From NCBI GenBank assembly GCA_976226885.1, contig OZ320313.1, forward strand, positions 71,734,001 to 71,798,000: DNA of 64,000 nt, given 5' to 3'. This document shows, one piece after another, positions 2,750-55,881 of this stretch. Source of the stretch: Iphione sp. A-MEVVRFRX5. Lineage: Eukaryota. Below the pieces are notes generated by a model, which had not been told where the DNA came from, ran no database searches, and was given only the letters and a program-made list of their open reading frames with translations. Position numbers and translations under genes: made by a program. The stretch's first letter is position 1; each line of letters opens with the position of its first letter.

Positions 2750-4567
2750 ATAATATTTAGTAATAATATTGGTAATGATAAACCATTTGTCATACTCTGT
2801 ATTCTCTTAGCAATAAAACAATAGGACTTTGTATTTTACTTTCGTCAAATCACACATGTAATACAACAAGAAAGCAACGTTAACAACTTTGAACACTGCA
2901 AACAAAACTACAACATGCCATCTTGTTTGGTTCTACAAATTGAAACACGTCTCGAAAAACTAAAATAATTAAACTATCTCAATGATAGTTTTCCCAGTAA
3001 CAATATAGGAGCACATAGCCTAAAGTACCTCTTGATTATAAGCTGGCTTCCAAAGTAACATTGTACGCCTATTTCCTGAGAGATACTTTCAAACATTTAT
3101 ACGAAGAGACAACACCCACAACTTTGAAATCCACTCATGTGGCAAGATTCGTGATATATCCATAACTTAATAAGTGAGCGGCAAAAGTACATGTACACCC
3201 CAAAATGTATGGCCACCGTCTTGGTATCGACAGTGGCTGCAGAATCCCTTACAAGACAAGCACAGTTTGTATTTTTTTCTCCTTTAGTATACTACACTAC
3301 ACTTATCACAAGAATAACTTCAAAAACGACACAAAACAGCCCAAAATGACACAATAAAACCTTTGAAGGTACTGCAACTTTGCAACGCTATCCTGCTGGC
3401 TGAAAGTATCTCCCAGGCGATGCTTGGAGAGTGTGATTGGCGCGTAGCCCGGGTATCAGAATTGTTTAGACGCGGCCTTTAGGACGCAGGACGCACACGA
3501 CGCATGACGACGACCACGACGACGCGACAGGAGAAGATGGAGAAAACAAGGACGCACGCTTACATGGGGGACACACGTCACGTGTTATCTATTGAGAGAA
3601 GATAAGCCAAAAAGGGGAGAAAAATTAAGAAAAAAGGTCTTCCAGCGGCGGTAGTGGCAGCAGCAAAAACATACAGGTCAACAATCACTCCCTTGTCTGC
3701 TATAACATAGGATGAAACGTGTCATTTCGTAGATATCAATATTTATGTAGGCAAACGAGTGCCAGGCCATGGCGTCCATTCTAGCGATTTGCAATATATT
3801 CATAATTTAGTTTCGTATAAAATATAGCTTGTATTAATTAAATTTGAAAACTTTCCATAATGCAGTGATACACGTTAACTTAAATCGAACGTATCCTTCT
3901 ACAGTACTTTCTGCAGATCAATAAGTTTAGTGTAAAATGTATCATAAACTTGCTCTGCTATGTGAATGTTGCAACAGTGTAAACTTAAGTGAAGCAAAAA
4001 GCATGTTCTTTGGGACAGAATTATTATAGGGGGTGCAATCTATGCAGCTAAAAACATTCAGAGTACCATGCCGGTCATTCATCATACCCTGAGGTACCGT
4101 AATAACAGGCACACATACACTCTTGTGAAACTCATGCAACGACGTCCAATCAAGCGGTAGGAGCAACAAAAATATATACACGCACATCTGCAGAGAACTA
4201 CAGATGTAGTGAATGGGCGGAGAAGATAAGTTATAGTCATAATCTTTTTATGGGAGAGTTTTACTTTTTGGTAGCGGATAAAGTTAAAAAAGGACAGATT
4301 ATGTATTAAGGACCATTGGTTATGATGACTACAGAATGACTGCACAGCAGGTTAAAAGACAATTGATAGGTGGACAGATCTTAAGACAGAACTATGAAAC
4401 TAGACTGATTGACAGATGAAGGTATAAACAGGTCAAGATGAGTTGAGCCACATAAGAGGTAATGAAAGGATTTGAAAAAAGACCTAGCCAAACAACATGG
4501 CGGTTATTGATAAGGTGGGATAAATATACATGTATATATTCATACATATACATATATATAGAGATAA

Positions 4568-4627: not shown

Positions 4628-5246
4628 TCTTGCAAAAATTCCTGAGAGGCACAGTTTAAAAGGATGCATGCTCTAAGTGACATGCACTGAATGTTTTAAA
4701 AGTAAACAGTCATTCTTTTCTCTGTGTGGAAAGAATAGTTTGTACACCTGGAAATGTTGTTGAGTCGAGTTTAACAAGTCATGGGGTCATATTTAGATTC
4801 CGCGGGAAAACGTGTTGGTTAAAAAAAATCCTTGTGGGGTTATCTCATGAAAAAAAACTGTGCTGGTGATCTGTACAGACTATGCATTTAGAGGAAGCGA
4901 GTGAGGACCATGCAATATTCGTGTGGATACTTTATATGCTGAACACTGACACAACACTCAGGCAGCAGAGCGAGCTAGAGAAATATTACAAGCTCAAGGG
5001 AGTGAACTAGTCAACCGACCTACACTCAAACTGATGCTACAAAGACAGAAATAAAGAAAATGAATACGAAAAACAGACATTCAATAGGGGAAATCTAAAG
5101 AACACGCACAAAAGGGATGACCTTGAGATGACGTCACATGACCATTTGTAGTTAGGTATGATATTCGGAGAGAAAATTAAGACTGAATGTTCAAAATGAT
5201 GTTCATCGTCTTCGTATGATGAACGAATATCTTAGTGCGATGAGAA

Positions 5247-5252
5247 TTTATT
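5247..5252 (-). promoter_or_regulatory. Candidate polyadenylation signal AATAAA for an unspliced short 3' UTR
   Basis: tttatt on the plus strand, about 730 nt downstream of the stop; motif only. Confidence 0.3.
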
Positions 5253-5957
5253 TATACACCTATTCATCTCCTCTGGTTCCTTTTTGCCATTTCAACTGGC
5301 TGAATGTTGCTGCCATCTCTGATCAAACACAAAACATATACTTTTAGGATGGGCCCGGGGTGGGGTGGATTCAGATGCCGAGGAGACAATGTTAACATGT
5401 ACACTTTAGACGGTATAACCAAGAGTTAACACAAAACACATGGGCACACGAAGATTCTCTGGTAAAAACAGATCGAAGGAGGCTGACAATCTGAGACTTT
5501 TAACTCGTTACACGACATTTCTCGTTTTCAGACGCCAGTACTTGATGTCCAAAAAAATGTTGAAACTAAATGAGTGCTTTTCTGCCGCAGCAGCGTAGAA
5601 TATTCCAGCTTATAAGCCACCTTTGACCTTCTGGCCATGCGCATACATCACGTTGCCCGCCAAGAGTTTGCATCGCTTCTACTACTCCTTAGCCACTTTA
5701 CTCCCCCTCCCTCGTCCAGAACAAGTAGGCCAATCCTCAAGGGTTCGCGTACGATCGCAGTCCGGCCGTGACAAATATGGCTCTGAACCACCTCCTCCTA
5801 CGCCGACTGGCGTACTGTAGTCGGGTCCTTATGAAGCGACTTCGAGGCAAACTTTCCAGAGATAAACGTGGAAAGACGTCCGGCGGGCATGTGGTATGGT
5901 ACAGACAGGGGACGAGTAGGTACGGCGGGGCCACAGGATTTCGAATGATAAATGACT

Positions 5958-6109: not shown

Positions 6110-9100
6110 CTAGAACAGCACACAAGATAACAGGCGTGCTAAATTGTGTTGGCCAGGAGTCCAGCAGGAGCAGAACGCGCCGAAAAACGCTGAGATGACG
6201 TATACTGATGCTGTCGTGGGTGCAGATGGTTAACGTCTAACTCGATGACTGCTTTTCGATCTATTTGGCTATGATTATTGCCCCACAAAAATATGAAATC
6301 AATATAAACATTTTTTTAAACGCGAGGACATTTACCTTATAATTAATAAGGTTTGAACTTAAGTTCACTAAGTGACACTATTCCCACTGTAAAACTCTAA
6401 GATTAACGGTACTCAGATCAACAAGGTGTGGCTAGGTAACGGGACAGCTGGGAGGTCGGAAAACATTATTCCTGTGGTTCCCTTCAAGACCACGAGACAA
6501 AAAAATACATCCTGTCAACCCTTGCTAACTGTTAACAATGTGTACATGGTTCTTGGATTATGACTTCTGTCAATTCATCTAGTTTGGAATTGTTGTCTAG
6601 CACTTTATGCGCGGAGAGTTAAATGCAAAATAACACTGTCTTGGACACCCCTGCTGGAATGACATCCCCCTCCCTCCCCCCCCGTTTTTTTTACAGCCCT
6701 TCGGCGTGTCTTCTCGCAGGTGGCTCACCGAAGCACTTGCTGAGGTTGGTTTGTTTGTCGATGAAGACCTTGGCTGAGATGACGGTGCCGAATGGCATGA
6801 ACATCTGCATGAGGTCGTGATCACCGAACTCCTGAGGCAAGTGGTAGATGAATAGGTTGGCTCCATCAGGGCCTGTGAAAAAGGCAGATCGAGGTATTAT
6901 TAGGTGCCATAAAGACATGCACGTACTTCATTACGCACTGAGGTCAGTCCGGTTTAACCTGTTCGGATAAAAGTCCCGATCTCTCATTTTGCACGTTGTT
7001 CGTCATTTATCGAGTTTCACTCCTGGATTGTATGGATATTTATGCTATTTATGAATGCTATTCGTACAGCGTCGAGTCCAATGAAATGGGTTTTATCAAG
7101 TCAATGACTGTCACATTCGGTGATTTGATAGAAATTCAAAAACAGAAAAAAAGGTGACATTATGTGACATCGTATGCAAAATCTGTAATTACCTTCACTT
7201 TGTTTGCCAGCTGCAGAATTGGCTGCGGCTTGCTGAAGTTGGGCGGTTGTTTGGGTTGTGAAGGCATTAGGAAAAGAAGCTGGAAAAGAAACGAAAATCT
7301 GTACACTGTCCTCCATATCGTGAGTCCGTGCATGTGACTTGTTCAATTGCAATCAGTCACGTGTAGCCAATTTGTGATTTCCACGTTTAAAGATATCTGG
7401 AAAGAAGTCATTATATATTCTGTGATGGTTTCCTTTTTTAATCTATACCATATGATTACTGGACTTGCAAAAAAAGAAGGGGGGAGAGAGGGGGTTCTCA
7501 TTACAAGCCAAAGTTGTTATTGGAAAAAGATGTCAGCCTTTAATCAAACACATTTGGTTTTGTAAGAGTAATTCAAACAATAGATGCAAATATGCCAAAA
7601 ATGTATCAAGAAACTAGTAGGTCAGGAACACTGGATGTGTTATGCAGAGGGCGGAAAGTATCATCAATTCATGTTGGCAACAAAAGTCGATTTTGCCAAT
7701 ACAAACGGTTTTAAACACCTCTTCGGCTTAAACGGGTCACCAGTCGAATCTGGAACATGTGACTGATTTTGATGGGGCAAATCACATACAGATTTGATCT
7801 TAACATTCTCATTTCTGCAAGAGAAGAGAAGATTTTCTTCCAAGAATAACACATCTGTGATAAGATGTGCGGAACAGAGAGAAAACAGGGGATGAAGTGG
7901 AAAGAACTTTCTTTCTCGAAATCCTGAATGTTTGGTCATAGTAAGCTTAAACGACATTGTGTAAGAAACGATATTTGGTGTTGGAAAACCAGCAAGCTTT
8001 AGAAAATTGAAACCTTCCAGCTGGGTCCTAGTTAAAACGTAAGAAACTTCTAGAGGCCACATCCCTTGCTGCTCCTACCAGTTCTAAATAGGATGCAGGC
8101 GATATGAACGCTTTCAACTGCCTAGCCTTCAATATCCCACTTTGGGGTCACCAATTATACAGCAAACTAGAATATAAAGCACCCACATGGAAGATGCTTA
8201 ATGATCAATACTGCTTAATTCAATGCATAAATCGAACTCCTGTATGATCGGACATCCACTGAGAAATACTTATTACAGGAATCATGACACCTACGTTACT
8301 TCTGATTATGGTAGATATTACGGGCAAAATGGAAGAGGTAGCGAGTACAATAAGACTCCTCGGGTATACATAATTTAATTTATATCTTTATTGTACATGT
8401 ATGTGCGTACCTCTTCATAAATCCATTCGCTACTTCAAAATAAAGAAAAAGAAACAATCTGACAACTTCATATTGGCAGTCACTCTAACTGGTGAAAATA
8501 TTATGCTCAAGCCACTTGTCCAATGAATTCAGAATAAACTTGGCCCTAATATAATCCTGTTACATCAGATACTAATATATTTCTAGCTCTACTAGTATTA
8601 CCTAGGCGTTTCACTATTCACGACTAGAGATGCGTGGAGGGACGGAACTGGCCTTTTGTATATGTACTGCCTACCTGGCACAACATTCATGCAGGTAGCA
8701 TTGCCAGTCATTCCCATCGTTTTTCATATGGGATGTTTATACACGTTTCAAAAGTAACTTTTTACCTTCTTGAAATGGGCTAATTTGAAACCGGTTTCCT
8801 TGTAAAAAGAGCTGACAAAGAATGTCTTTTCAGAGAGCTGACAACGGATGTCTCTTAAAGGGAATATCTATAAGAAGTGATACGTTCTGGTGAAATTTGA
8901 CCCAAGGAGCAAATTAAGTACAGACGTTCAGCAAACCAGAATAACATGACTGAAGGGAAATATGACGCCAAGAAAAGTAAGATACAAATGTCTCATCGCT
9001 GTGAACAATCCTTTTCGAATACATCTACAGCTTTCGTGGTACAAGCTATTAAGCTTAAGTCTTCCTCCAGTTAATAACTACGTCGTAAACATGAAGGGTA

Positions 9101-12100
9101 CGACCAAAGGTAGCACAGGACGGAACACTGCCTGCAGGATTCGGACACAGACGGCGTCAGGACGGTTGGCCTAAAGAAAACATCTATGAGGAAAGGGCAG
9201 ACAAACGATACATTAGTCAAGGCTTTGTTTGTGGGAGCAATTGTTTTTTGAATGAGGGCTTTCCAAGTTTCTTCAAGTCTTTTTCACTTCGTTGAAACAT
9301 GAGCCTGGGTGGCATACTTGTGGCCAAAATTGCTGTCGCCTCGACAGGTAAGCGGTCAAATACAGCTACGTACAGTAATAAAAAAAATACAGCTTTGTAA
9401 ATTAAAAAAAAAGGTTGTTCCCATCAGTTTATATCCTGGTTTGACTGTGACTGCTGAAACGAATGGAGGCAGGTGACAAGGCCGGTGTGACGTATGTGTG
9501 AGTGCGGATGTCTGCAGTGTTTGGGGTGCGTGTGTACATGACTGTCCTTGTTACATTTATCTGAGGTGCACCTATGTAGTCTTCCATGCTGGCAATGGTG
9601 CAAGCAGGCGGCCTACGTTGTAGAGATGGGCTTCGTCACAGACGTGGCGGGGATGGGGATTTGGGAGAGTGCGGTTCCGAGGTACGGAGAGGGTTGGGCT
9701 TTATCGAAAGAAGCGGTCAGCAGGAGGAACTAATAGGGGAATGCAGAGGCCGGGGTCTGCAGGTAGCATGTCACCACTGGCAGCCACAAGAGGGCGATGA
9801 GCAGGCCGGCGGCGGCGGCGGCGCAGCAGCAGCGGCGGAGTCCACCACACGCTCACCACAAGACACATAATCATACAAGTACAGAAGACGTACTGAAAAG
9901 GTTTTTTTTATATAAAAGAAAAACAGATACGCGGGTAGGTAGGACAGCCAGTCAATGCAAATCTGAAAAAGTATCAAAATGTGAATTACCTTGACCGAGT
10001 AAACCAGACAAACCTGCGTATTGCTGGATGCCTGAGTAGGCCTGGGTGAGTGCGTCGCTGCTGCCCGCCATCGATGCGTTCCCTATGCCGTTGCTGCCGA
10101 TGTTGGGGGCGACGGCCCCGACATTCGGCAAGCTGTTTTGAAGGCCAGTGAGTCCGCCCATCGACGCCGAGGAACTTGTCGTGTTGGTCGTTGCCTGACC
10201 TGTGGAGACAGAGAGCGCAAACAAAATTGAAACAGCTGAAAAATACAAGTAGTTGCTCTTTTTGCACGGTGGTTGAAAAGGTCTAGGGTGACAGTGCGAT
10301 ATGGCCGGTTATTTTCTAAATAAAGCAAACGAAATAAACTTATTCTTGTCACTCTGGGAGCTGTAAAATCTACTTGAATTAAGAATAGTACGGTCACGAA
10401 AAACAAAGCAAAAACGTATAAAACTCAATTATATTAAACAAAGCACCTTAAATGCATTACCAGTGAACATATTCACCAAACAAAGTTTTCAACTCAACAG
10501 GACCATCTGTATACAAGTTAAGGTGGACAAAAACGATTTTATCTGATTCAGGCTCTTGGCAAGGGATATTATATCCTGGCTCCAAGGATAAGCAGTTTTT
10601 TGCTCTTGAACTCATTATATTATGTGATCTATACTTTGACCACATACTGCACTAAATGGGTGAACTGAGAAAGGTTGGTACATGTCAACTGGAGCAAAAC
10701 GATTCTTACTTGGTTGGGCTAACTGGAAAACACTGTTACTTGTGCTGTGTTGGTAATCCATGGCACTTCCTTAAAATCATCAGAAAGACAGCCATAAACT
10801 TCATTTCAAGCAAACACATTATTTGTCCTTTTTAAAACAGTTATTATCATTTTCAAGTATCATATTGCAATAATACACCCTTGGCAAATGCCTAAATTGA
10901 TAAAGTTATCTCTTAACCATCGACACACATTTAACCAAAATCTTGAAACGAAAGTTAACAGAGTAAGCAAAACATGGTAAGTGATAACACAGGTACGAAA
11001 GATTGAACAGTGTAAGCAAAAACTGTAAGAATTAGCAAACATCAGCCAAGGTCAAGGGCATATGATTTGAAAACAAAAGAGAAGCCTGGTAAACTAATAG
11101 CCTCGAGTATGCATTAAAACGAAGGTATATATATATAAAAAAAATCATTCGAACAGAATTGGTTATTTTTCATCATCCCCCTTTTGGGGAATACAAAGAC
11201 ACTGCCCAAGACATGTCTGACTAACGGAAAGAGGACACTGAGTGTAGGACGAAACTCATCTGATGACTGGTTCTAGGACAACACCAAATAATTAGTACTG
11301 TGACATTGCCTAAATCTTACAAAAATGCATGTTGCTGTTGCGTTTTTTTCGCTCTAGTTGTGGTATAAGTTTATAACCATCCCGAACCTACTGTCTTATT
11401 TCCAATTAAACGCTTGCTTCAGCCGGTACCCAAATTGAGAGAGACCGAACTGTGGACAGGTATATATGTACGTGGTTTAAGAAGATGGATAAACGGACAA
11501 ACAAACCGACAGACGTGATAGCAGGCAAACAGGTAACAGATACGGAGATGGAGACTGAGAGGAGGCAAGGGAGGATTTTCTAAACTGATAGTATTCTTCG
11601 CAGTAACTCGGAGAACCTTGTTCATCTTCGCAACTGTAACAGGACTAAAACTCACCTATACTCATAAATGTACAAACATGTATATATATTCACATGTGTA
11701 CCACAACATGCAGTCTCACCTAGTCCTAGTTGTCCTGTTTTCCCTAATAAAGCAGCTTCAAAAAGACAGAAAGCTGGTCAGTTTTTGTGTCTAAGACAGA
11801 CTGCAAACTACAAAGAAAGACGCACAGGTCCATGCCGCAGTCAACAAGTCAAGGGCAGAGCAATATGGAGCAATTAACGAAAAAAGGTGGTGACATTCTA
11901 TGCGACAAGAAAATAAAAAGGTGAGCTAACGCAAGTGGTATTTTGTACATTAAATACATGAATAAATAAAATATCCAGGCCAACTTGGTACACTAATTGT
12001 GCTGGTGCGAGATAAGAGATAGAAAGCCAGAAGCAGTACGAAAAAAGTCAATTCAACAGATGCACCGCAGGCAGCAGAAAATAAAGACGTTGCAATAACT

Positions 12101-39100: not shown

Positions 39101-41582
39101 CAGACATCTCATGCCGGTTGCTTTCATGTCGCACTGGTTAACTGATCCTACCTGCAGTTTGTAAAGTGATATACAACGTAGATAATTCAGTCCATGACGA
39201 AATGACCCCTTTGATGGGTATTGTTTACCCATCCGTCTTCTGCGCCATAAAGCTTGTTCATTCTCTAGTTTCTTGTTCCATACAAACTTCAGAATCACTT
39301 GGCGCCTGGGGATACGATGCGGGCCAGGTAGAAGGCAAATGGCCTACCTGTCTAGGTAAAATAGCAGCGACGTGCTGACGACCGTCAACACACCAGAAAA
39401 TCTGATAGGAAAGGTCACTGCCATTACAATTTACCAGTCTTACGCCTTTTGAGATTACCTTCAATCGGGGGGGGGGGGATAATTACATACGTAAATATTA
39501 CTTGCAAGACATTAAGCTCGTTATATGAGACTCGCAGTTTATCATACGTGCTCAGTGAGTTCAATTCTGTCAATAAGCACTGAAGATCCTGAAAATATAA
39601 GGTGGTTACTGCAACATCATATATCTTGTCTTTTGTACGAAACCAGCGACAATTATCTATGTAACATTTACATGTGTGTACATGTATGCCATTGTGTATA
39701 CAAGTATATCACGGGGTGACACATCTTATTTGCTCGCCCGTTTTTTTTCATGGCGCGACCACTAATTTTTGTCAGGAAAGCTTATCCACGAAATGTCTAC
39801 TGCTAAGAATTTCGATTGGCAATTCATTCATGTCTGGAAAGATTTAATTGGGAAAAATAGCACCAATCAGGCGTCATATAAATGCTGTCTGAGTGAATTA
39901 ACACTATCTACGAGAAAAATCTCCCATTATCCACTTGAGGGGAAGTCTTGTTGTAGCAGTAACTTGAGTATTTATATGGAGATATCACTTTCCCAGGGAC
40001 ACTAATTCTCCGGTATAAAAAGATAAGCACTTTTATTTATCGACCTTCGGGGTTGTTGTTATAGCCTCATACGGAAACGTCAAAACCAGGATCGGGGGTG
40101 GATCAGAGAATATATTCACTTGGATCACTTATCAGCGCGTATCAACACAGTTGGCTAATTCAGACCATAAAACAGACTTGTATGAAAGCCGTCCCTTCTG
40201 CTGCACAGATATGTGCAAACAGAATCTATTTCTAGCTCTTGTCCCAGTTTCTTCTTCTTTCTTAGAAGGTAGATCTGATTCTTCTTAACAAACGTATGGA
40301 GTAAATTAAATCTAAATATCACAAACCTGAAAGCAAACACGTTCGAGTACCGTCCGTATAGTTCATATTTGAGTCGAAGGTTTTTTTCCTTGAGTAAGCT
40401 TCAGACCGTGCGTGACCACTAAAATATCAAAGGGTGGACTTTAACACCCAGTTTTTAGGGGAGCAGTGTTAGCCTTTTCCACGCGACCTCCCCGGTTAGC
40501 AGGTTTTAGCTTTATGGCTTGGATACTTCAGGAGGACAGGTCGCGTGTAGGATGCGAAAAAGAAGAAAAGCGCTCCCTGCTGCTGTTGATAGACTTGGGT
40601 TATTTAGTTAAGGCTAATTCTGAAGTCACGCTCTCTGCATGTGAACACCAGACGTGTTTCCTGAACGCTAACGTCCGTCAAATGTGTCAGAAATAGTTTA
40701 AAACACTCAATCAAGCTGCACAACGTGACTAGGTCTAGATGGTAGCTGGTAGCATCTACATTTGGGAAGCGGGATAAAGATCTTCCCCTTGTTTGTGAAC
40801 TGGGTGAAGAGAGACGAGGTGTGACTAATACATTAAAAATATCCAGGGGATCGTGTCTAATTTCCTCTTCTATGAAAAAAAAACCGTCCCTTGCAATTCT
40901 TTTGTTTTACTGTAGGGGCGCTTCCCAACACCTGCCTGTCGTTTATTCCTGGTCGAAATTCGCCAATAATTAAAGGCCTCCTTCTAAATTTGCTCGCATT
41001 AATGCCTGTCAGGGCCGTCAAAATGATCATGGCGGCTTCTTGCCGCGGCTGGAGGCTGCAAAGTTGGGCGGCACCGGCTACTTCGGGCCCGGCTTTACGC
41101 TGCAGCACGGGCGCGGCTGATGAAGAAATGGCGCCCACAGCCTTTGATGTGTGAGACCGTTGCCGGTAACATGGCGCCCGTCAAATGTCAAAGTTGCTCA
41201 GCCTGCCGCGGTGCCCGTCGCCTCTTCACAATAGACGTGGTGGCCCTAATAGCGTCCATACGGTACGGCCTACTGCACACTAGTGATCATTCATCCACCC
41301 AGAAGTAAGCCACCTGGGTTCATCATCATCACCACCACCATCATCATACTACCGAGGCAGAGCGTAAGCCAAAACAAATCCACTCCTGCTTCGAGGCCTT
41401 CCTTGTAGTGTGAAATGAAGTCGTCATTATGACATTACGAAGACTTCAGACAATTAAATGATTACAACGGACTTCTTCATATAACAAGATTGTGGACCTG
41501 TGAGGTCTATTGTCCCCCACCATCAACTGCACAGAGAAAGAGGGGGGGGGAGAGAGAGACAGACAGAGACAGAGAGAAAGAG

Positions 41583-41633
<51 letters not shown>

Positions 41634-41705
41634 GAGAGGGAGACAAACAGAAGAGAAAGGGAGAGGGGAGAAAGGGAGAGACAGACAGACAGACATACAA
41701 ACAGA

Positions 41706-41743
<38 letters not shown>

Positions 41744-43076
41744 TGTCTCTCTCTCTTTACAACCACCTTGATTGGCACCTTGTTTTGGGGTGGTTGGCTA
41801 GGCTTGTTTAAGTCCTTCAGGTTTACAACTCTCGGTTCTGCCTCACTGAGCACCAGCCTGCTACAAACCCTCGGTTCTGCATGGCTGAACAGAGCTCCCT
41901 CGGTTCTGCCTCACTGAGTACCTGACTGCTAGGTAGAAAGGAGATATTGGTGAGTGTGTATGTGTGCATGTATGTGCATTATCAGACCTAGGAATCCCTA
42001 AAACAAGTATGTATGTTTGTAGGTGTGTTAGCAAAAGAGTAAAATTGACATAATTTCACTTTCAAAATACTTGAATTACTACCAAAATTACCCAGTGCCA
42101 TGGGGCCATATATACCAATATCATATATCAAAATCAGCTCTTTTGAGTGAAGGGCTTGAGACTTATAAGACCCACAAGAGTGTGACGGATGGTCGGGACA
42201 CCAGCTGGTAGCATTCCTAATGTCCCCCCCTCTATGAGGCGGGGGACAATGAGCTATCAATTTCACTCGCATTTCGTAACGTTGGTGACGGAGAAATATG
42301 TGTGTGTGTATATATACATATACAAAAACACATTACTGGAACCTTAATAACATTTCACTTCTAGTGTGTTAGACTAACCGTTCCAGCTTAAGTGTCCGCT
42401 GTATCGACAAACGGAAAAAATGATACCTGAATGAACTTTGCTGGTAAATGAAATCTTTAGAGGCTGACTGGCAAAAACTATGATCTCCGCAAAAAAAACT
42501 ATTATTGAAACCAGCATAATTTAATCTACCATTTCCGGATCTACCTGCAATATTGTAAACATTTCAGTGTCTTTTTAACAAGCTTGCAAAAACAGCAGAT
42601 TACAAAACAGCTGTCGGATAAATCCTGCAAACATCACTTAGTGAAAGAAGGTAACGAAACACAGGTGCACACGTATGTCAGGCTTCGCTATAAAATACAC
42701 ATACAATATACGTATACTGTCCTCATCATACGATTAATAGGTCTCAGGTGTTCTAATGTTACATCTCACAAAAACGCCATATATCATGGTCACGTTTAGC
42801 TTTCCTCTTCTTTTTCTCCCTTTCACTACTCTTAAGCTTTGTGGTATTAGTCTCGCACTCTGGAATTAGAAGAGTAAGGACATCAAAACGCAATCGAGGA
42901 AACTGACCTTTGCTCTGGCCCGTCACTTTATCCCGCAGCACATTTAGCTGGTGGACTGGCCCGAACTCCTCGAACATCTTCCGGAGATCGTTCTCGTCCA
43001 TCGACCGAGGGATCTGACCGACGAACATCTTAATGGCGTCGGGGTCAGGCTCTGTCTTGGGTGTTTGTGAGTTCAT
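5982..43076 (-). CDS. CELF1/2: CELF1/2-family (CUGBP Elav-like / Bruno-like) RNA-binding protein. Core CDS join: 42908-43076, 30926-31008, 22263-22311, 20740-20871, 19513-19592, 19208-19348, 18917-18983, 18463-18594, 15575-15649, 13919-14002, 9990-10199, 7193-7279, 6729-6872, 5982-6109 (1581 nt, about 526 aa)
   Basis: Manual splicing gives one open frame with GT/AG at every junction. RRM1 has MFVGQI and KGCCFVTF, RRM2 has LFVGML and KGCAFITY, RRM3 has LFIYHL and KCFGFVSY. The linker motif [14 protein letters not shown] and the C-terminus [12 protein letters not shown] are typical of CELF1/CELF2 rather than CELF3-6 (recognised from memory of the family). Confidence 0.96.
6729..6872 (-). CDS. 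CELF1/2: CELF exon, RRM3 N-half ([48 protein letters not shown])
   Basis: ctgcctttttcacag|GC ... TTC G|gtgagc; 144 nt, phase 1-1. Confidence 0.96.
7193..7279 (-). CDS. CELF1/2: CELF exon preceding RRM3 ([29 protein letters not shown])
   Basis: ttttcgtttcttttccag|CT ... GAA G|gtaatt; 87 nt, phase 1-1; ends like the family AAGSQKEG motif. Confidence 0.9.
9990..10199 (-). CDS. CELF1/2: CELF linker exon ([10 protein letters not shown]...[16 protein letters not shown][GLSGLLGQ]) with alternative donors at 10014 and 9990
   Basis: ctctctgtctccacag|GT ... GCA G|gtttgt or CAA G|gtaatt; contains the conserved [14 protein letters not shown]. Confidence 0.92.
13150..13173 (-). CDS. CELF1/2: Candidate 24-nt microexon (GSSGTPSS)
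   Basis: gctgac branch-like motif, then gtggttgttgcag|GCTCCAGCGGGACACCGTCATCAG|gttggc. Phase 1-1, frame-preserving, weak donor. Confidence 0.45.
13919..14002 (-). CDS. CELF1/2: CELF linker exon ([28 protein letters not shown])
   Basis: gcctgatag|GA ... ACA G|gtgaga; 84 nt, phase 1-1; resembles the family LQNLATL motif. Confidence 0.82.
15575..15649 (-). CDS. CELF1/2: CELF linker exon ([25 protein letters not shown])
   Basis: gcgttgcag|GG ... TCA G|gtactc; 75 nt, phase 1-1, open, with linker-like L/Q/S/A composition. The donor is non-optimal. Confidence 0.72.
18463..18594 (-). CDS. CELF1/2: CELF linker exon ([44 protein letters not shown])
   Basis: gtgatttacag|AC ... CCA G|gtgagt; 132 nt, phase 1-1; the LQ..LAAAAAA motif resembles the CELF1/2 linker. 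Confidence 0.85.
18917..18995 (-). CDS. CELF1/2: CELF linker exon ([SLLQ][22 protein letters not shown]) with two in-frame acceptors (18995 and 18983)
   Basis: tttttacccttcag|TCTCTGTTACAG|TTACTG; donor ACAG|gtaagt; phase 0 to 1. Confidence 0.9.
19208..19348 (-). CDS. CELF1/2: CELF exon, end of RRM2 and start of divergent linker ([24 protein letters not shown]...GPQYLA)
   Basis: tttcgttcgcag|GGC ... GCT|gtgagt; 141 nt, phase 0-0; family motif VVKFADTQK. Confidence 0.95.
19513..19592 (-). CDS. CELF1/2: CELF exon, RRM2 RNP1 ([27 protein letters not shown])
   Basis: tgtcgtgtttcag|GA ... GAG|gtacag; 80 nt, phase 1 to 0. Confidence 0.95.
20740..20871 (-). CDS. CELF1/2: CELF exon, RRM2 N-half ([45 protein letters not shown])
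   Basis: ctttacactgcag|tag|aag tandem acceptor; donor AAAG|gtaagg; 132 nt, phase 1-1. Confidence 0.95.
22263..22311 (-). CDS. CELF1/2: CELF exon, end of RRM1 ([16 protein letters not shown])
   Basis: tttttgtag|ATG ... AAT G|gtaaga; 49 nt, phase 0 to 1; matches the family motif [11 protein letters not shown]. Confidence 0.95.
28355..28373. repeat. Poly-C homopolymer
   Basis: Run of about 19 C. Confidence 0.95.
28906..28948. repeat. (TA)n/(AG)n compound microsatellite
   Basis: atatatatatatgtattatatatatatagagagagagagaga. Confidence 0.9.
30926..31008 (-). CDS. CELF1/2: CELF exon, RRM1 RNP1 ([28 protein letters not shown])
   Basis: attttgtttcag|GA ... GGG|gtaagt; 83 nt, phase 1 to 0. Not in the ORF track; found by reverse-complement reading. 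Confidence 0.95.
35112..35163. repeat. Two-copy 26-bp tandem duplication
   Basis: ccggcctttcggcctaccagatttta followed by ccggccttttggcctaccagattttt. Confidence 0.9.
41533..41741. repeat. Compound (AG)n/(AGAC)n purine tract followed by (GT)n microsatellite (about 41708-41741)
   Basis: Directly visible; it explains the spurious ERERER/CVCVCV ORFs. Confidence 0.95.
41831..41920. repeat. Degenerate three-unit tandem repeat with core CTCGGTTCTGC
   Basis: Core at 41831, 41870 and 41900; units 1 and 3 share ctcggttctgcctcactgag. Confidence 0.85.
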
Positions 43077-43080
43077 GTTG
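42908..43080 (-). CDS. CELF1/2: CELF exon, RRM1 N-half ([57 protein letters not shown])
   Basis: Acceptor ctttcctcccgtttccag|CAACATG with ATG at 43076; donor AAAG|gtcagt, phase 1. The acceptor 4 nt before the ATG implies at least one upstream exon. Confidence 0.95.
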
Positions 43081-46000
43081 CTGGAAACGGGAGGAAAGCA
43101 GTGTTAGAATACAGATGGACCTCCCCAAGTTTAGCACGGTAGAATAAACAAGGCTATCGGAATCATTCTATATGTTCCGCTTAGGAATCCATTCGCGAAC
43201 ACGGGACCTGGAGACAAAAATTTGCTTTCTGAAAAAGAGTGCGCTAGCAATTACCGATACAATGACAGGTCCTACCTCTTCCACCCCTAGACTGAGCTAT
43301 TAACTGATTCATTCAGACAAGACGGCATCTAAAAACCCTCTACACGTTATCTGCGATGTAGTTGAGAAGGTGCCACAAACAAAATTATATAAGGAGATCG
43401 TGCTGGACTCGTCTGATACAAAAAAAACGAAACAGCATTTCTATTATCAGAAACAGACATCAGGTTAAAACAGACCTGAAGATACAAATATAGCCCACTC
43501 GAAACAATCATATTTTCTTATGCCTTGATTACAGTCGAACTGTTTAAACACTCCCGATTTGCAACCATCTAGAGTAATTAATGCTATTAAATGAAGGAGT
43601 TTTTCCTAAACGCCAGGTGTGGTCTCCTTGTCGATTTACCTTTACCTCCCGAAGGAGAGACATCAGTGCAGCAGGTAGCGGGCTAGCTATCCTCCGGCCG
43701 CTCTACCTTTGTGATAGCACGAGTAAATTTAGCCTCATTTGCTGAAAGAACAACATGACCTTTGCTGGTACCAACCGCTTTGTTGCTCTGCTGCCGAGGC
43801 TTAGCCTTTGAATGTTAGCTTGGCCCCGCCCTGTCAAATAACCCTTTCAAACGGCAAGTAATCAATGACACCATTCCGTCTGAACAGCAGGCAATACACA
43901 TTATTTAAACCATACTCAATGAAGGGTGTGCACAGTTGTTTTGGCTGCTGGTCCTCCTACCACAAATGGCCACTTACTCCTGAGTCTAGGAATCCCTATT
44001 AGGTTCCTATTATTGCCTGGCTGCGTTACCCTTATACGAAAGTTGGTCAATTCCAACTTTTAGGGGGAAAAAAACTTGCGATTGATGTCATTCAATGTCT
44101 AACACAGAAAAGTAACATTCTAAATTATTGCACAAAAAGGTTAGAGAAGAAGTCAATAAATATATCACTATTTTTTTAAAGACTGTTTGCCGACGGTCGG
44201 CCACTAATTAAATCGATCGAAGCACTAAGTGGCTTCTCCCCAAGCCATATGGAAGCCATAGGTGAACATTTTCTCTAGTAAGGGAGGAAGCCATGGAGCT
44301 GTCTATAAGCGACGCGTCGGCCCATCTTGGCAATAATGCCGATAGCTAAGTACATGTACGCGGATTAACATATCATTTGATAAGCCCGAAAAAATTCAAC
44401 CAACAAAAATAAACGGACCGACTGGTTTGTAAGGTAGAAACGTGCAGGCCTAAACCCATATGACGTGAAGCAAACGTTTCTAAACATGGCAGGCTGAATG
44501 CGCTCTACAACAATGCCAATGGAGTTTGTCACCTGCTTTGAGCGCTACGCCGGTTTGCTGTTACTATGCGTAGGTGTTGTCAGGTGGAGATATCGGTAAT
44601 GGTGATGCTCACACAGACCCGTGGCCATACCGAGTGCCGGTGAACTGCTCATACACTATTTATAGGAGCACCGAGGCATCACATACACCGTGTCATGTGG
44701 GTCGATATTGTGATTACTACCGTATCCTGGTCGAAGGAGAAGACAGCCCCGAGACTGGGGCATGATGCCACAGAACAACAGGCAGGTGGGGACGATTGAC
44801 CGTGTCCTGTCATGTCAGTTAACAATCCCCTGCTACACACCTTCTACAAAGCAGGTGAACCCTATCTGTCATCCCTCTTATTAAACTAAGCACGTTGGAC
44901 CCGTGTTAGGCACCACTTATTGTGATAGGCAAATAAATGACTTCTAATATGCAATTACTCGAACCACAACTCACCCGGACATAAGATCCAACAGGTTATG
45001 TATGCCAGATATGCTGCTGATGCAGCTATAACTACACTGCTCCACTATGCCTTTACTAGTACGATAAAGATCTGTGGAAGGTGATAATACATGTATATGA
45101 ATAGAAATGACGGGATATGCCTGTATGCTACAGATATTTATGTATGATGATGTAGTGTTCACTATGGCCTTGCAGTTGGTCCATTTGTATTACAGTACCC
45201 AATACGAAGCCTCGGCAAGTTACAAACACACGTTGAAGAATATAACAATTTTTTCCCTTTCATGTGTTCATCTTATATTTAAATAATGTATATACAAAGG
45301 GTTTGAGAAAGAGACAGCGTGTCAAGAGTATCCCTGTCTTTGTAAAAAAAAATTACAATAATAACAAATCTCTTCTATTTGTCATAACATTTCTAGTGTA
45401 CTTCTTTCATAAGCACTTATGGGAAACGTAATAGAAGCAACGTGTAGAACACGCCGTAAAACAGCAGAGTTAATTTGCCCGTGATGCCGGTACATGTCAA
45501 GCCCGCGCCGGCAGTGACGACGGCGGGTCGCTGCATGTATTACAAGGTGCTTGAGTTTCTCTGTTAAGCCAGTGCCTTCGGTAAGGGTCTTACATTAACC
45601 ACAATGCTGTGGGATAACAGTGGTTTAAGAGGAGAGTAGTTCGCTCAGCTGCCTGTAGACCTGCCCATATAGGAGCCGCCCATGCTATGCATACTTAATA
45701 ACATCCGGAAGCCGGGTCAGCAGGCGGCTTCGCGGCTTGCTCTGATCGGCCATCTCGGGTGTAAGTAAAGGTGCACTGCAGGTGTAAATGGATAGACGCG
45801 TCCACCAGGCAGCCGGCAGAGAGACGATACAGGGCCACGTCGAATGAATAAAACCAACCCAGCACGCATATCTGCCCGTGCAGTGAGCCTACAGGCGATG
45901 TGTTCCTGAACTGTCAACGATTACGTTAAATAAACGCTCGGACCATGGGGGGAAAATGCACAGCGCTTAAATCAAGAGAGGACATAATTTTGTTCAGCAC

Positions 46001-46196: not shown

Positions 46197-46346
46197 NNNN
46201 NNNNNNNNNNNNNNNNNNNNNNNNNNNNNNNNNNNNNNNNNNNNNNNNNNNNNNNNNNNNNNNNNNNNNNNNNNNNNNNNNNNNNNNNNNNNNNNNNNNN
46301 NNNNNNNNNNNNNNNNNNNNNNNNNNNNNNNNNNNNNNNNNNNNNN
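46197..46346. other. Assembly gap (150 N)
   Basis: Run of n. Confidence 1.
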
Positions 46347-46541
46347 TCAGTGTTGTGTGGATGTCGATAACAACACAGAGGGGCGCGATGCCGGCTTGCT
46401 ACTTCCTGAAGGTCGATGCCCTACTACCCCCTCCACCCCCCGCCTCCCTGTTCTTGTGTCAATACCGAACTTCCTGTGTAGGTACGTGAGGGTGAAAATC
46501 AATGACCCGGGTAAGAGTGTACAGGCTAGAAGCTTCAGCAC

Positions 46542-46969
46542 CTGGTAATCGTGGTGATGGCCATCATGTCGGACGACGACGGCACTGCCGGCAACGACGG
46601 CGTGCAGAAGGCGGAAGCGGAAGTAGCCGCTGTTGTTGCGGCGGGATTTTCCAGTCCGTTAGCGATGGCGCCTACCGGCACTGCAGACGGGGAGAGGGCG
46701 GGGCCGACAGAAGGCTGGTGGTGCTGCTGCAGTAGGTGATGATACTGGGACGTCGGTGATGACAGCGGAGGCAATGGCGACGACGATGGCGACAGCGATG
46801 ACAAGGGCGGCGGTGAGGACGAGCAGGTAGACTGTTGAAGAAGAGGATTGTGGCCTAATGGCGGCCGCTGCTGCTGCTGCTGCTGTTCCTGCTGGTCGTG
46901 TTGGTGCTGCTGATGGTGATGGTGGTGCTGGCTATAGGACAGAACCGGGACTAGGCAGGCGCCCTGCAT
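46542..46969 (-). CDS. CELF1/2: Candidate upstream coding exon: 142-aa His/Gln/Ser/Pro-rich low-complexity N-terminal extension (MQGACLVPVLSYSQHHHHHQQHQHDQQEQQQQQQRPP...)
   Basis: The ORF ends ACC AG|gtgctga. This phase-2 donor, just before the stop, joins in frame to the 43080 acceptor (AG|C AAC ATG = Ser-Asn-Met). The real ATG is 46969; the ORF track starts at a GTG. The donor is weak. Confidence 0.55.
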
Positions 46970-47388
46970 CACTATAGCGTTATCTCTGTGGGGGCTCCTC
47001 CTAACAGGACACGCCTACACAGCGCATGTATGAACCACAGAGTAACACTCGCGGCCTTGGACAGTTCGACAAAAAAGAAGCCACTATTCTGCACACCTAT
47101 TCACTAGGGGGCAGGAAGGCAATAAGGAGTCCTCTGTCTCTGTGATGCGTCCTTTAGTTCCTTTCGATAGGATGTCTCCTTCAGTATGCCTTCTTAACAG
47201 GCTGAGAATCTGTACGCCAGATGAATTAGGTCCAAAGAGGCAAGTACTGCACCAAGGTCTTGCAGATATAGCTTGCTGACTGACAGAACGATCTCCAAAG
47301 CCCCGGCCGGTTGCAGAGAGTTAGGAGAAAGGCGTTGGAGCGATGTTCACTCGTTGGTGATGGCGGTGAGTGTGAAACTCGTGCCCAC

Positions 47389-47486
47389 CTGTTCTTCCTG
47401 TTCCTCCTGCTACTACTGCTGCTGCCGTTGCTGCCGTCGCCTCTCCAACTACTAGTAGTACTCGTGTTCCCGTGCCCTTTTGTGTT
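47389..47486 (-). CDS. Candidate upstream coding exon B, 98 nt (NTKGHGNTSTTSSWRGDGSNGSSSSSRRNRKN-R/S)
   Basis: Pyrimidine tract catttcttctcttattaccaagcgtcgtag| and donor AAC AG|gtgggc. Phase 0 to 2, open in the frame that continues exon A. Confidence 0.33.
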
Positions 47487-47599
47487 CTACGACGCTTGGT
47501 AATAAGAGAAGAAATGACGCAACAACTGCCGCAAACGATAACGCTGACTTGAATGCCTCAGCAGATGTACGCAAGTACTTGTGTATGAATTTCACTTAC

Positions 47600-47842
47600 G
47601 CTTGCAACACTCCCGGTTGTTGCGCTGATGTAGTAAGATTCTTCTTTATGAGGCATCAACTGCTCACTGCGTGCGTTGTATGTCACATATGCCTGCGTTA
47701 CAGATGCTACGTTAGCTACTGCTGCTGCCGCAGCCTGTGCTAGTAGAGCCGCTATCGCTGCTGCTCCTGATCCTCCAGGCCTGTTGACCCGCCCTCGCGT
47801 GCATTGATCCGCCCGCACAGGTGAGGCTGTCAGAGATGGCAT
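47600..47842 (-). CDS. Candidate upstream coding exon A, 81 aa, Ala-rich (MPSLTASP...AAAIAALLAQAAAAAVANVAS...TTGSVAS)
   Basis: ATG at 47842, open frame, consensus donor AGC|gtaagt in phase 0. Confidence 0.35.
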
Positions 47843-50800
47843 GAGGCACTGACGGGTCTTCTAAAGACCACTGACCTAGTCGGCCACCTTCAGCACTGCA
47901 GCAGAACGTTGCCTTCCCTGTCACCGTTCGTCCAATGAGTGGCGTTAATCCGTGCTAGTTTTCCACCCAATCTATAGATGGCACACACGATAGCATCTAC
48001 AACAGCAGGTGAACTAGCAGGCGACGGCCAGGTGGCTGTACTGCACCTGCTGATCGCATCTCTCTGGCGCTAACGTTGTTACCTGTATGACTACACCCAC
48101 AGCACTCCATCTGCCGCTGCCGCCACTACTGCAGCCAGCGTGCTGCTGCTGCCTTTCCAGTTACTGTTGGGCTTGCTGCAGGCAATATAAGCTAACTACT
48201 GTGCGTACTGCCACGCACAACTTTACTGCTACATTGATGGCACAGAACTTAAAACAAGTAATACCTGTTGCTAAGAGAAGCTTATATGCAGATCATTTGT
48301 ATACATGTATTTATATTAGTTTAGCATGTACATAGGTACTAACACAACATTCTGGCAGCGGCGGGGATAGTGCTGCTCTCCTTACTAGCCACGCCAAGGA
48401 AAGCGAATCCAGATCCCGTCGCCTGCTTCAAGGTGAGCTCAGGTCACAGGTGGGAACACGGAAGAGCAACAGCTGACATGGAATCGACGTTATGAATTAT
48501 TTACCGGGGAAACGAGGAAACGCACTAGACCACAAAAACTAAATCATGCGGTAATTTTGGTTGAATGTAAATAATTCCGTAATGATGTGGACGGGAGAAT
48601 CGTTTCTTTCCATCCTTTTCCCGTGAAATAAATATGCACTGAGCTAACACATTAATATCCTGAAATATATTACGGGTAACACAAAAATAGCAGCTTGCCT
48701 TCAATATATACTTAGCCAACAAAAAACCTCATGACAAAAAAAGTGTAAGCTCGCTCGATTATTAGTTCAGGAAAACGTTTGTCCTGAAACGTGGACGTCA
48801 TCAGAGGCCATTTATTCTGAATGAAGTTCAGTCAAGTATTAGTATTCAATAAACCATTGTTTTCTTACTGAATGACAGCAGATAATATGCCAATAGGTTA
48901 AGAACTACGGCCACTGCGTTAGAAGCTGTCAACCGCAGCCTTGCAGCGGAGGTCTGATATGATGTTTTCCTGCTGAAATCCAGTCACCTTTTATCTTAGC
49001 CCTATGCAAACACTGCATTATATATACTACTCGCACTGTGCGAAGCCACTCCCAGGATTAATTGGAGTGGGCGGGCTGGTAAGTCGGGGCGGACGAGACG
49101 ACTTACCGAGAATAACAATCAGTGATAAAGAAGAGCAAAGCAACACATATAAGCACTATAATGCACTGGCGCCACTGAAAACCGAATATATTCTACAGGC
49201 GCCACAGGCGTCAGCGGATGACGGATGAGGTGGCAGGTCAGAGGCTGGCCAAAAATGCGAGCACATTTCATACGACGATGGGCCCATTTCGGCGCCATTT
49301 CCAACGCCCTCCTGCTGATTATATCTATTTGGATACAACATCCATCACCATACAGGTTACTTAAGGCTGATTTGTCAACAGGCACCCGTCTGGACGTCTA
49401 TTTATGGCCACCACGTAAGGGTCGTGGGTCGCCGGCCCCGATCTCGACTGGGAGGGTTCGCAGACGGTCGACTGGTGGTGATGGTATTGTGGAAAGCGGT
49501 CTGGCCGTGTGTCAAATACTAGGCTAGCGACAGGGACGACCAACAAGTGCTTTTACTCGGCATACACCCGAGTCTGAGTGATGCCGTCCAAGTTCACAGA
49601 GCGCTTTCACCTTTCTAGGAATAACACTGCCATCGGAGGTGGAAGAGGTCATCTAAACAAAACTGCGTCGCACTATGCCTAAGATGGGGGCCGTCATATA
49701 AACGAATAAAATCATCCGGAAGGGTCAGATAAATGAGCTACAGTTGTTTAATGAATGGGTTCGCTTAATGCCTCATTCACCCTGTGAGAGTCTGCTGATC
49801 CCTGGAAGGGATGTGCCGTCTAGTAATGGCGAATCTAGGGCACGTGTCTGGAATGGACATCATGATGTCCCTGACCCTGATCTCCGACCCCACCCTCACT
49901 GCTATGTTGACTTACGCCCAAACTTTTCACACCTTAAAGCCAAGTACTCACACCGGACGTTAAATTAACATCGGCGAGGCGTTGGTATATTCCTTAATCT
50001 CTTGTCAAGTTAAGAGAGTATTCTATATCAAAAGGATGTATATACTGTATTCTATGTCACAAAATATTGTATATTTCTAAAGAGCACACAGAGGGATGAC
50101 AAATAACTCACACAGAATCTGCAACCTGAAATGTGAAAAAGCAATGCCTTAAGGCCATAAAATACTAGAACATACAAATCGATTAGAGAACAGCCACCAT
50201 GGCCATTGTTAAGAAAGATAATGTGGTTTACTGTCAATAAGAGCACGATAAATGAATACGATGTAACGATCTTTGACACTACAATTGAATATAAATACCG
50301 TCAGTAATAAGAAAACAGGACACGGAAAAACGCTTGTGTTCTACTCTGGACCAAATCCATGGAAATAAATGTAGTTTTGTGTAGTAAAGTGCAGCAATTT
50401 AGCCTTTCTTCTCTTTGATCTCTGTTCTGTATGTATTATGAGTGACAGTTTATCCTCTTTATAGCCTGGAACGGAGATAGTGTTTCTGCTGTTACGAGGT
50501 CTATTCAACAAAACACGGACCTCATAAATGGAACTGCCACGTTAACAATGAATAAGCTGCCCCGTAAGCAAAACACTTGGCCCTTCCGGACGGGCCATAA
50601 ATTAAATCAATAAAGTTATCTTCCACTTAACCTCTTCATGTTAAGATACTTTTATTCCCTTTTTTTAAAAAAAACTTTATTCATACTGACAATTCATTGG
50701 TGTCAGTCAATAGTGTTGTACATGTGGAACATTCCTTAATTCTACTATATATAAGCTATGTACACGAATATGTACAAGTATATATACAGAGTATTTACAA

Positions 50801-55744: not shown

Positions 55745-55881
55745 NNNNNNNNNNNNNNNNNNNNNNNNNNNNNNNNNNNNNNNNNNNNNNNNNNNNNNNN
55801 NNNNNNNNNNNNNNNNNNNNNNNNNNNNNNNNNNNNNNNNNNNNNNNNNNNNNNNNNNNNNNNNNNNNNNNNNNNNNNNNN
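55745..55881. other. Assembly gap (137 N)
   Basis: Run of n. Confidence 1.

Follow-up and report, generated by a model that had tools for sequence, protein, structure and literature searches.

The analysed window, a 64,000-nucleotide stretch of contig OZ320313.1 from Iphione sp., carries a gene of the CELF1/2 type on its minus strand, spanning approximately positions 43080 to 6000. The CELF family regulates alternative splicing as well as the translation and decay of mRNAs in nerve, muscle and the germ line. Full-length CELF proteins mapped 10 exons of this gene in the window by tblastn, with bit scores of 812 for P0162, 760 for the protein of the annelid Paralvinella and approximately 600–730 for the listed molluscs, in weak agreement with an annelid origin. 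The open reading frame at 43076 matched the Pfam domain RRM_1 (E = 8.6e-10), and a motif scan placed CELF/Bruno signature motifs, including KRLKVQLKR, between 43031 and 6035 of the minus strand. The motifs, the RRM_1 match and the mapped exons identify a CELF/Bruno gene, a family defined by two N-terminal RRMs, a divergent linker, a C-terminal RRM and characteristic RNP motifs. The RRM1 exon, which contains the Pfam RRM_1 match, occupies 42908–43080 (minus strand) and is bounded by an acceptor reading ag/C AAC ATG and a donor reading AAAG/GTCAGT. The genome contains one other CELF paralogue, on C10, the RRM1 of which is only 60% identical. Open frames of 135–150 amino acids are also present at 41446–41853 of the window (minus strand), within the intron that follows the RRM1 exon, and at 3884–4336 (plus strand) in L009, an orthologous locus described below, where the frame lies upstream; both consist of microsatellite-like SL/TH repeats and are compositional frames rather than genes.

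A candidate 5′ exon precedes the RRM1 exon at a distance of 3.5 kb. A minus-strand open frame runs from 47014 to 46538, 159 codons from stop to stop. The upstream in-frame stop codon (47015–47017, minus strand) lies 5′ of an ATG at 46969, which is the predicted translation start. From this ATG, the coding part of the candidate exon (46542–46969, minus strand) comprises 142 codons to 46544, followed by the two bases AG of a split codon (46543–46542). The original prediction had singled out this region as a low-complexity frame and quoted two strings from it, HHHHHQQHQHDQQEQQQQQQ and SSSPPPLSSLSPSSSP; both are found in the frame. Reading from the ATG, the sequence begins with MQGACLVPVLSYSQ, continues through a His/Gln tract and a Ser/Pro-rich stretch, and finishes with an Ala/Ser/Thr-rich stretch ending in SSSDMMAITTIT. 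The His/Gln tract is encoded by an imperfect array of CAG, CAC and CAA triplets that was detected by TRF at 46867–46931 (minus strand). By composition count, Ser, Pro, Gln, His, Ala, Thr or Gly make up 72–75% of the residues of the extension, which contains charged residues at only five of 142 positions, three aromatic residues and three asparagines. The frame occurs once in the 1.18 Gb genome; a search of the species' own genome found no paralogous copy.

The length of the frame is within the range of chance. Among 2000 dinucleotide shuffles of the 483-nucleotide stretch, 177 were open over at least 159 codons, and the same held for 75 of 500 when the GC-rich island around the stretch (approximately 46250–48250) was shuffled; the frame is located at the GC peak of this island (0.59–0.61). 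The window contains 16 open frames of at least 110 amino acids, most of them plainly non-coding with random-looking products. Because 9–15% of the shuffles match the observed length and long frames are this common in the window, length alone is not evidence of coding. Both the island and the shuffles fit an alternative reading, in which the stretch is a conserved non-coding element, such as a promoter or 5′UTR, with one frame kept open by its triplet-repeat composition. The other frames of the stretch contain two to seven stops each.

The open frame ends in …ATT ACC AG/GT GCT GA, so that 46542 would be the last exonic base and the last GT before the stop (46540–46541, minus strand; CAG/GTGCTG) a phase-2 donor, exactly as had been proposed. 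The RRM1 exon is preceded by the acceptor …ccgtttccag/C AAC ATG AAC TCA CAA at 43080. When the two exon edges are read by eye, the phase of the donor matches that of the acceptor. Joining them would complete AG+C to a serine codon, followed by asparagine and then MNSQ, and would place 142 + 2 = 144 residues ahead of the methionine of the RRM1 exon; the predicted junction …TIT-S-N-MNSQ and the gain of 144 amino acids from ATG 46969 are thus reproduced from the sequence. The donor is weak at positions +3 to +6 (GTGCTG), whereas the remaining donors of the gene resemble GTAAGT or GTGAGT. The putative intron extends from 46539 to 43081 on the minus strand. The window contains two runs of N, of 150 bases (46197–46346) and 137 bases (55745–55881); the first is inside the putative intron, approximately 200 nucleotides downstream of the donor. 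A comparable arrangement would be that of human CELF2, in which the N-terminus of a long isoform is said to connect to the RRM1 exon ahead of the methionine with which the short isoform starts.

Orthologues of the gene were collected by using the frame of the RRM1 exon as the query, scoring residues 1–57, and consisted of gene calls the size of one exon, located on long contigs from other species. Including up to 10 kb of flanking sequence, seven orthologous loci were examined, making eight together with the window. Loci L009 to L015 are considered orthologues of the window gene because the other paralogue of the genome is only 60% identical in RRM1. L009 is the closest, with 98% amino-acid identity in RRM1; between the two RRM1 exons synonymous differences are saturated (pS 0.72) and non-synonymous ones are rare (pN 0.007). 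L009 carries a counterpart of the candidate exon at 5494–5783, on the same strand and 4.2 kb upstream of its RRM1 exon, with 96 codons from the ATG compared with 142 in the window. The L009 frame begins with MQGACLVPVLPYSQHHQHQPQHQLQQQQQ, continues through a Ser/Pro-rich and an Ala-rich stretch to …GGGIMAITTIT, and is followed by AG/GTCCGC. Its other frames contain one to four stops each.

The two exons resemble each other most closely at their ends. Both start with MQGACLVPVL(S/P)YSQHH, in which the first 10 residues are identical, and both finish with MAITTIT immediately before AG/GT, with all of the last seven residues identical. The N-terminal block, codons 1–16 (MQGACLVPVLSYSQHH; 46922–46969, minus strand), is the same in L009 at 15 of 16 residues and shows six synonymous changes and one non-synonymous change (pS 0.56, pN 0.027). 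The C-terminal block MAITTIT (46544–46564, minus strand), which abuts the donor, is the same at seven of seven residues, with two synonymous changes and none that is non-synonymous. Seven of the nine bases changed in these ends are at the third codon position and none is at the second (binomial P ∼0.008, our own arithmetic). The low-complexity middle has accumulated many insertions and deletions that add up to 46 codons (138 nucleotides), and the frame is open in both species. The original prediction had named frame-preserving indels and a dN/dS below 1 in congeners as a check, and both are seen in the comparison with L009: the frame survives the 46-codon difference, and in the conserved ends eight synonymous changes stand against a single non-synonymous one.

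The boundaries of conservation coincide with those of the candidate exon. Over approximately 20 kb compared between the window and L009 by blastn and tblastx, only the RRM1 exon, the first ∼90 nucleotides of the frame and its last 29 nucleotides were aligned. The blastn blocks cover 46977–46884, beginning 8 nucleotides from the ATG, and 46568–46540, ending at the T of the donor GT. In-frame translations of the two species are unrelated upstream of the ATG as well as downstream of the GT; in particular, the interval between the upstream stop and the ATG (47015–46969) shows no protein-level conservation with L009, and the tails obtained by reading past the donor are RC before the stop in the window and RSAKTPEF before the stop in L009. 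The putative intron holds no block conserved with L009 in either the blastn or the tblastx comparison. In L009 the donor, CAG/GTCCGC, is likewise weak at +3 to +6 and likewise in phase 2, matching the acceptor of its RRM1 exon. Since the acceptor AG/CAACATG is common to both, the window and L009 would both read …ITTIT-S-N-MNSQ across the junction.

The assembly in ENA from which L009 derives includes a second contig, L018, that is 96.9% identical to L009 over 14 kb. The exon differs between the two by one synonymous third-position base and contains no indels, against a background divergence of 2–4%. Coding-type conservation, with the frame kept and dN much below dS, is present in both L009 and L018; the comparative support comes from one other species, represented by two copies. 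A 1-kb zone nearly devoid of differences between L009 and L018 (L009 positions 4750–5750) covers the exon and ∼750 nucleotides upstream of the ATG. Because it starts ∼750 nucleotides before the ATG, this zone fits a promoter plus first exon, and it is probably the promoter and 5′UTR of the CELF transcript.

These comparisons bear on the reading of the stretch as a conserved non-coding element. The extension of the low-divergence zone ∼750 nucleotides upstream of the ATG adds to what the GC-rich island and the shuffles offer in its favour. However, changes are biased towards third positions and synonymous sites, the frame is kept despite a length difference of 138 nucleotides, and conservation between the species sets in no more than 8 nucleotides from the ATG and breaks off at the GT. 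We therefore regard a non-coding element as very improbable. A second alternative accepts translation and dispenses with the splice: the stretch would be a separate upstream open reading frame, either a uORF in the CELF leader or a stand-alone protein of ∼145 amino acids, translated without being spliced to RRM1 and terminating at the TGA two codons after …ITTIT. The weak donor in both species is compatible with this, and peptide-level conservation at both ends would fit any translated frame. Yet conservation ends at AG/GT rather than at the stop, the tails beyond it differ in length as well as in sequence, and the donor phase agrees with that of the acceptor in the window as well as in L009, which makes a separate frame distinctly unlikely.

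The acceptor of the RRM1 exon was further compared among the eight loci. In an alignment around window positions 43081–43086, conservation begins at the acceptor AG in eight of eight, and the four bases before the ATG of the RRM1 exon are C-A-A-Y in all eight, with the asparagine codon AAC or AAT varying only synonymously. The CAAY bases and the acceptor-bounded conservation together suggest that the species of all eight loci translate sequence ahead of MNSQ, even where the His/Gln exon is missing. A third alternative is that the stretch is a coding first exon but is joined to another small, fast-evolving exon before RRM1, or belongs to a different transcript; the 3.5 kb of unaligned sequence and the run of 150 N between the two exons leave room for such an exon. 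Neither blastn nor tblastx found anything else conserved between them, however, and the RRM1 exon is the next conserved coding block on the strand and matches in phase, so that we consider an intervening exon or a different transcript quite improbable. Taken together, the shared start and end, the preserved frame, the synonymous bias and the termination of conservation at the GT support the proposal of a coding exon able to fuse in frame to RRM1. On this comparative evidence the frame is probably a real coding exon at the 5′ end of the CELF1/2-type gene, and its donor is most likely joined directly to the RRM1 acceptor at 43080.

The exon was searched for in other loci and databases. No counterpart was recovered from L010–L015 or L019; the sequence covered was the 10 kb ahead of RRM1 in five further orthologous loci, extended to 18 kb in one of these, L012. 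Its absence from the other loci means that the exon is lineage-restricted or lies further away there. A word-index protein search confined to candidates of 80–250 amino acids returned 1268 candidates, none of them significant, and a HMMER search of 1.84 billion representatives gave no match at E ≤ 0.001. The HMMER result is weak evidence of absence, because the L009 frame was itself not called by the gene caller and full-length proteins are subsumed in 50%-identity cluster representatives. Scans of JGI metagenomes with the two-species alignment or with a degenerate MAITTIT pattern recovered no relative, and an Rfam search of the stretch returned nothing relevant. A match of the frame to the Pfam AF-4 family was sub-threshold and compositional, and was discarded.

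Two other features came to light in these loci. An 83-nucleotide block (L011 positions 9507–9589; L013 positions 8304–8380) is conserved 0.4–1.7 kb upstream of the RRM1 exon. A 17-codon frame in L011 (MDSQQHCQYVAITYSSQ followed by AG/GT, 410 nucleotides upstream of RRM1) was considered as a coding exon and rejected, the L013 block having neither the ATG nor the GT; the block may be a 5′UTR exon or a regulatory element. In L015, a called gene at 3685–4212 (minus strand) contains three in-frame stops under code 11; apparently a different code was used to call it, or it is an artefact of the caller.

Coding exons in this position are known from other lophotrochozoans. P0045 (ERR1712142_1073791), one of the RRM1 matches, falls into a 90%-identity cluster with an Octopus bimaculoides protein, which was used as a full-length query and retrieved many mollusc CELF proteins. 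Their N-termini, which include Gnomon models, carry several differing in-frame extensions, each terminating immediately ahead of (N)MNSQ. Cephalopod forms end in MDNDDLIITATNMR or MLEEER directly ahead of NMNSQ, Haliotis forms in …AIAKTT or MEVMV, and further N-terminal forms are found in scallops, oysters, Patella and Pomacea. Some of the cephalopod forms are proteins of 536–546 amino acids on contigs of 1.9–2.3 kb, which must represent spliced mRNA because they are too short to hold the proteins otherwise. These in-frame extensions indicate that coding exons ahead of the RRM1 acceptor are normal in the group. The lophotrochozoan CELF1/2 genes thus resemble the gene model proposed here in joining an upstream coding exon in frame before (N)MNSQ, and they have several alternative N-termini per gene.

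The exon of the window nevertheless differs from the known forms in its sequence. Its His/Gln tract and its MQGACLVPVL start are absent from the listed lophotrochozoan forms, and beyond the window species the exon itself was seen in a single relative. When its C-terminal part was aligned with the N-terminal extensions of molluscs and annelids, no convincing homology emerged; the end of the cephalopod exon, L-I-I-T-A-T/S, loosely resembles M-A-I-T-T-I-T, a likeness between short motifs that is statistically weak. We judge the exon to be a lineage-restricted example of the N-terminal extension exons of CELF genes, a type that is already known. Among the mollusc proteins, the gastropod CELF2 models P0154, P0165, P0169 and P0219 (Patella, Haliotis and Pomacea) share an N-terminus of the form MRRG.R...(I/L)Q.(I/L)LKDL.KLQR, which appears to be a separate and older alternative first coding exon in gastropods. 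A basic motif, (A/E)K(R/K)L(K/R), occurs in the N-termini of P0207, P0176 and P0121, where it resembles a nuclear localisation signal; it has no counterpart in the window extension.

The extension is polar, nearly uncharged and low in complexity, as are prion-like and condensate-forming sequences, and it is on this composition that its description as condensate-prone in the original prediction is based. In Drosophila, granules assemble through the action of an N-terminal prion-like domain of Bruno 1, both in cells and in vivo (PMC9042795). Bruno 1 and the gene model of the window have in common a long low-complexity N-terminus, here predicted to be disordered, ahead of the RRMs of a CELF/Bruno protein. 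The analogy is loose: the Bruno 1 domain is rich in Ser and Asn, whereas the window extension is rich in Ser, Pro, Gln and His with only three Asn, and the two show no sequence similarity. Runs of at least five histidines target proteins to nuclear speckles (PMC2644819), and the window extension, which would belong to a splicing regulator, has a run of five within its His/Gln tract. In L009 the longest His run is two, so that the His/Gln character of the tract is kept but a pure His run is not. The suggestion that the CAG tract might be polymorphic is weakly supported. Short and interrupted, the tract contains at most six consecutive pure CAG triplets in the window and four in L009, and L009 and L018, as two haplotype-like copies, show neither an indel nor any other length variation in it, in contrast to what an unstable or polymorphic repeat would show.

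We propose that translation would start at ATG 46969 and that the exon would end at the phase-2 donor after 46542, serving either as the only first coding exon or as one among several and giving the CELF protein an N-terminal arm of 144 residues. This arm of ∼144 residues would be mostly disordered and nearly uncharged and would pass from His/Gln through Ser/Pro-rich to Ala/Ser/Thr-rich sequence ahead of RRM1. Purifying selection acts on its two short ends, MQGACLVPVL(S/P)YSQHH and MAITTIT at the junction, and the middle evolves rapidly through in-frame indels with its composition kept, as would be expected of a spacer or a low-complexity interaction region between short linear motifs. The pattern of conservation suggests that the ends make functional contacts and that the middle is a composition-constrained spacer or a region of weak multivalent interactions.

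The disordered parts of CELF proteins set the site of action and the partners of the protein, as has been shown for Drosophila Bruno (PMC9042795), and the arm may by analogy contribute to localisation or self-association. Tentatively, and with our own expectation leaning against it, the exon could constitute a lineage-specific regulatory module in which MQGACLVPVLxYSQHH and MAITTIT bracket a fast-evolving His/Gln and Ser/Pro spacer and control the targeting of a splicing regulator to nuclear bodies or granules, or its turnover; the I-T-rich motif at the junction would then perhaps date back to early lophotrochozoans and have its equivalent in the …LIITA… of cephalopods. General knowledge of the family would be unchanged, because isoforms with N-terminal extensions are already common in CELF. 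The exon would probably escape ab initio gene prediction, and its recognition would, if it is real, improve the annotation of the gene. The organism would then possess an annelid-type CELF protein with a long N-terminal low-complexity arm and two conserved short motifs.
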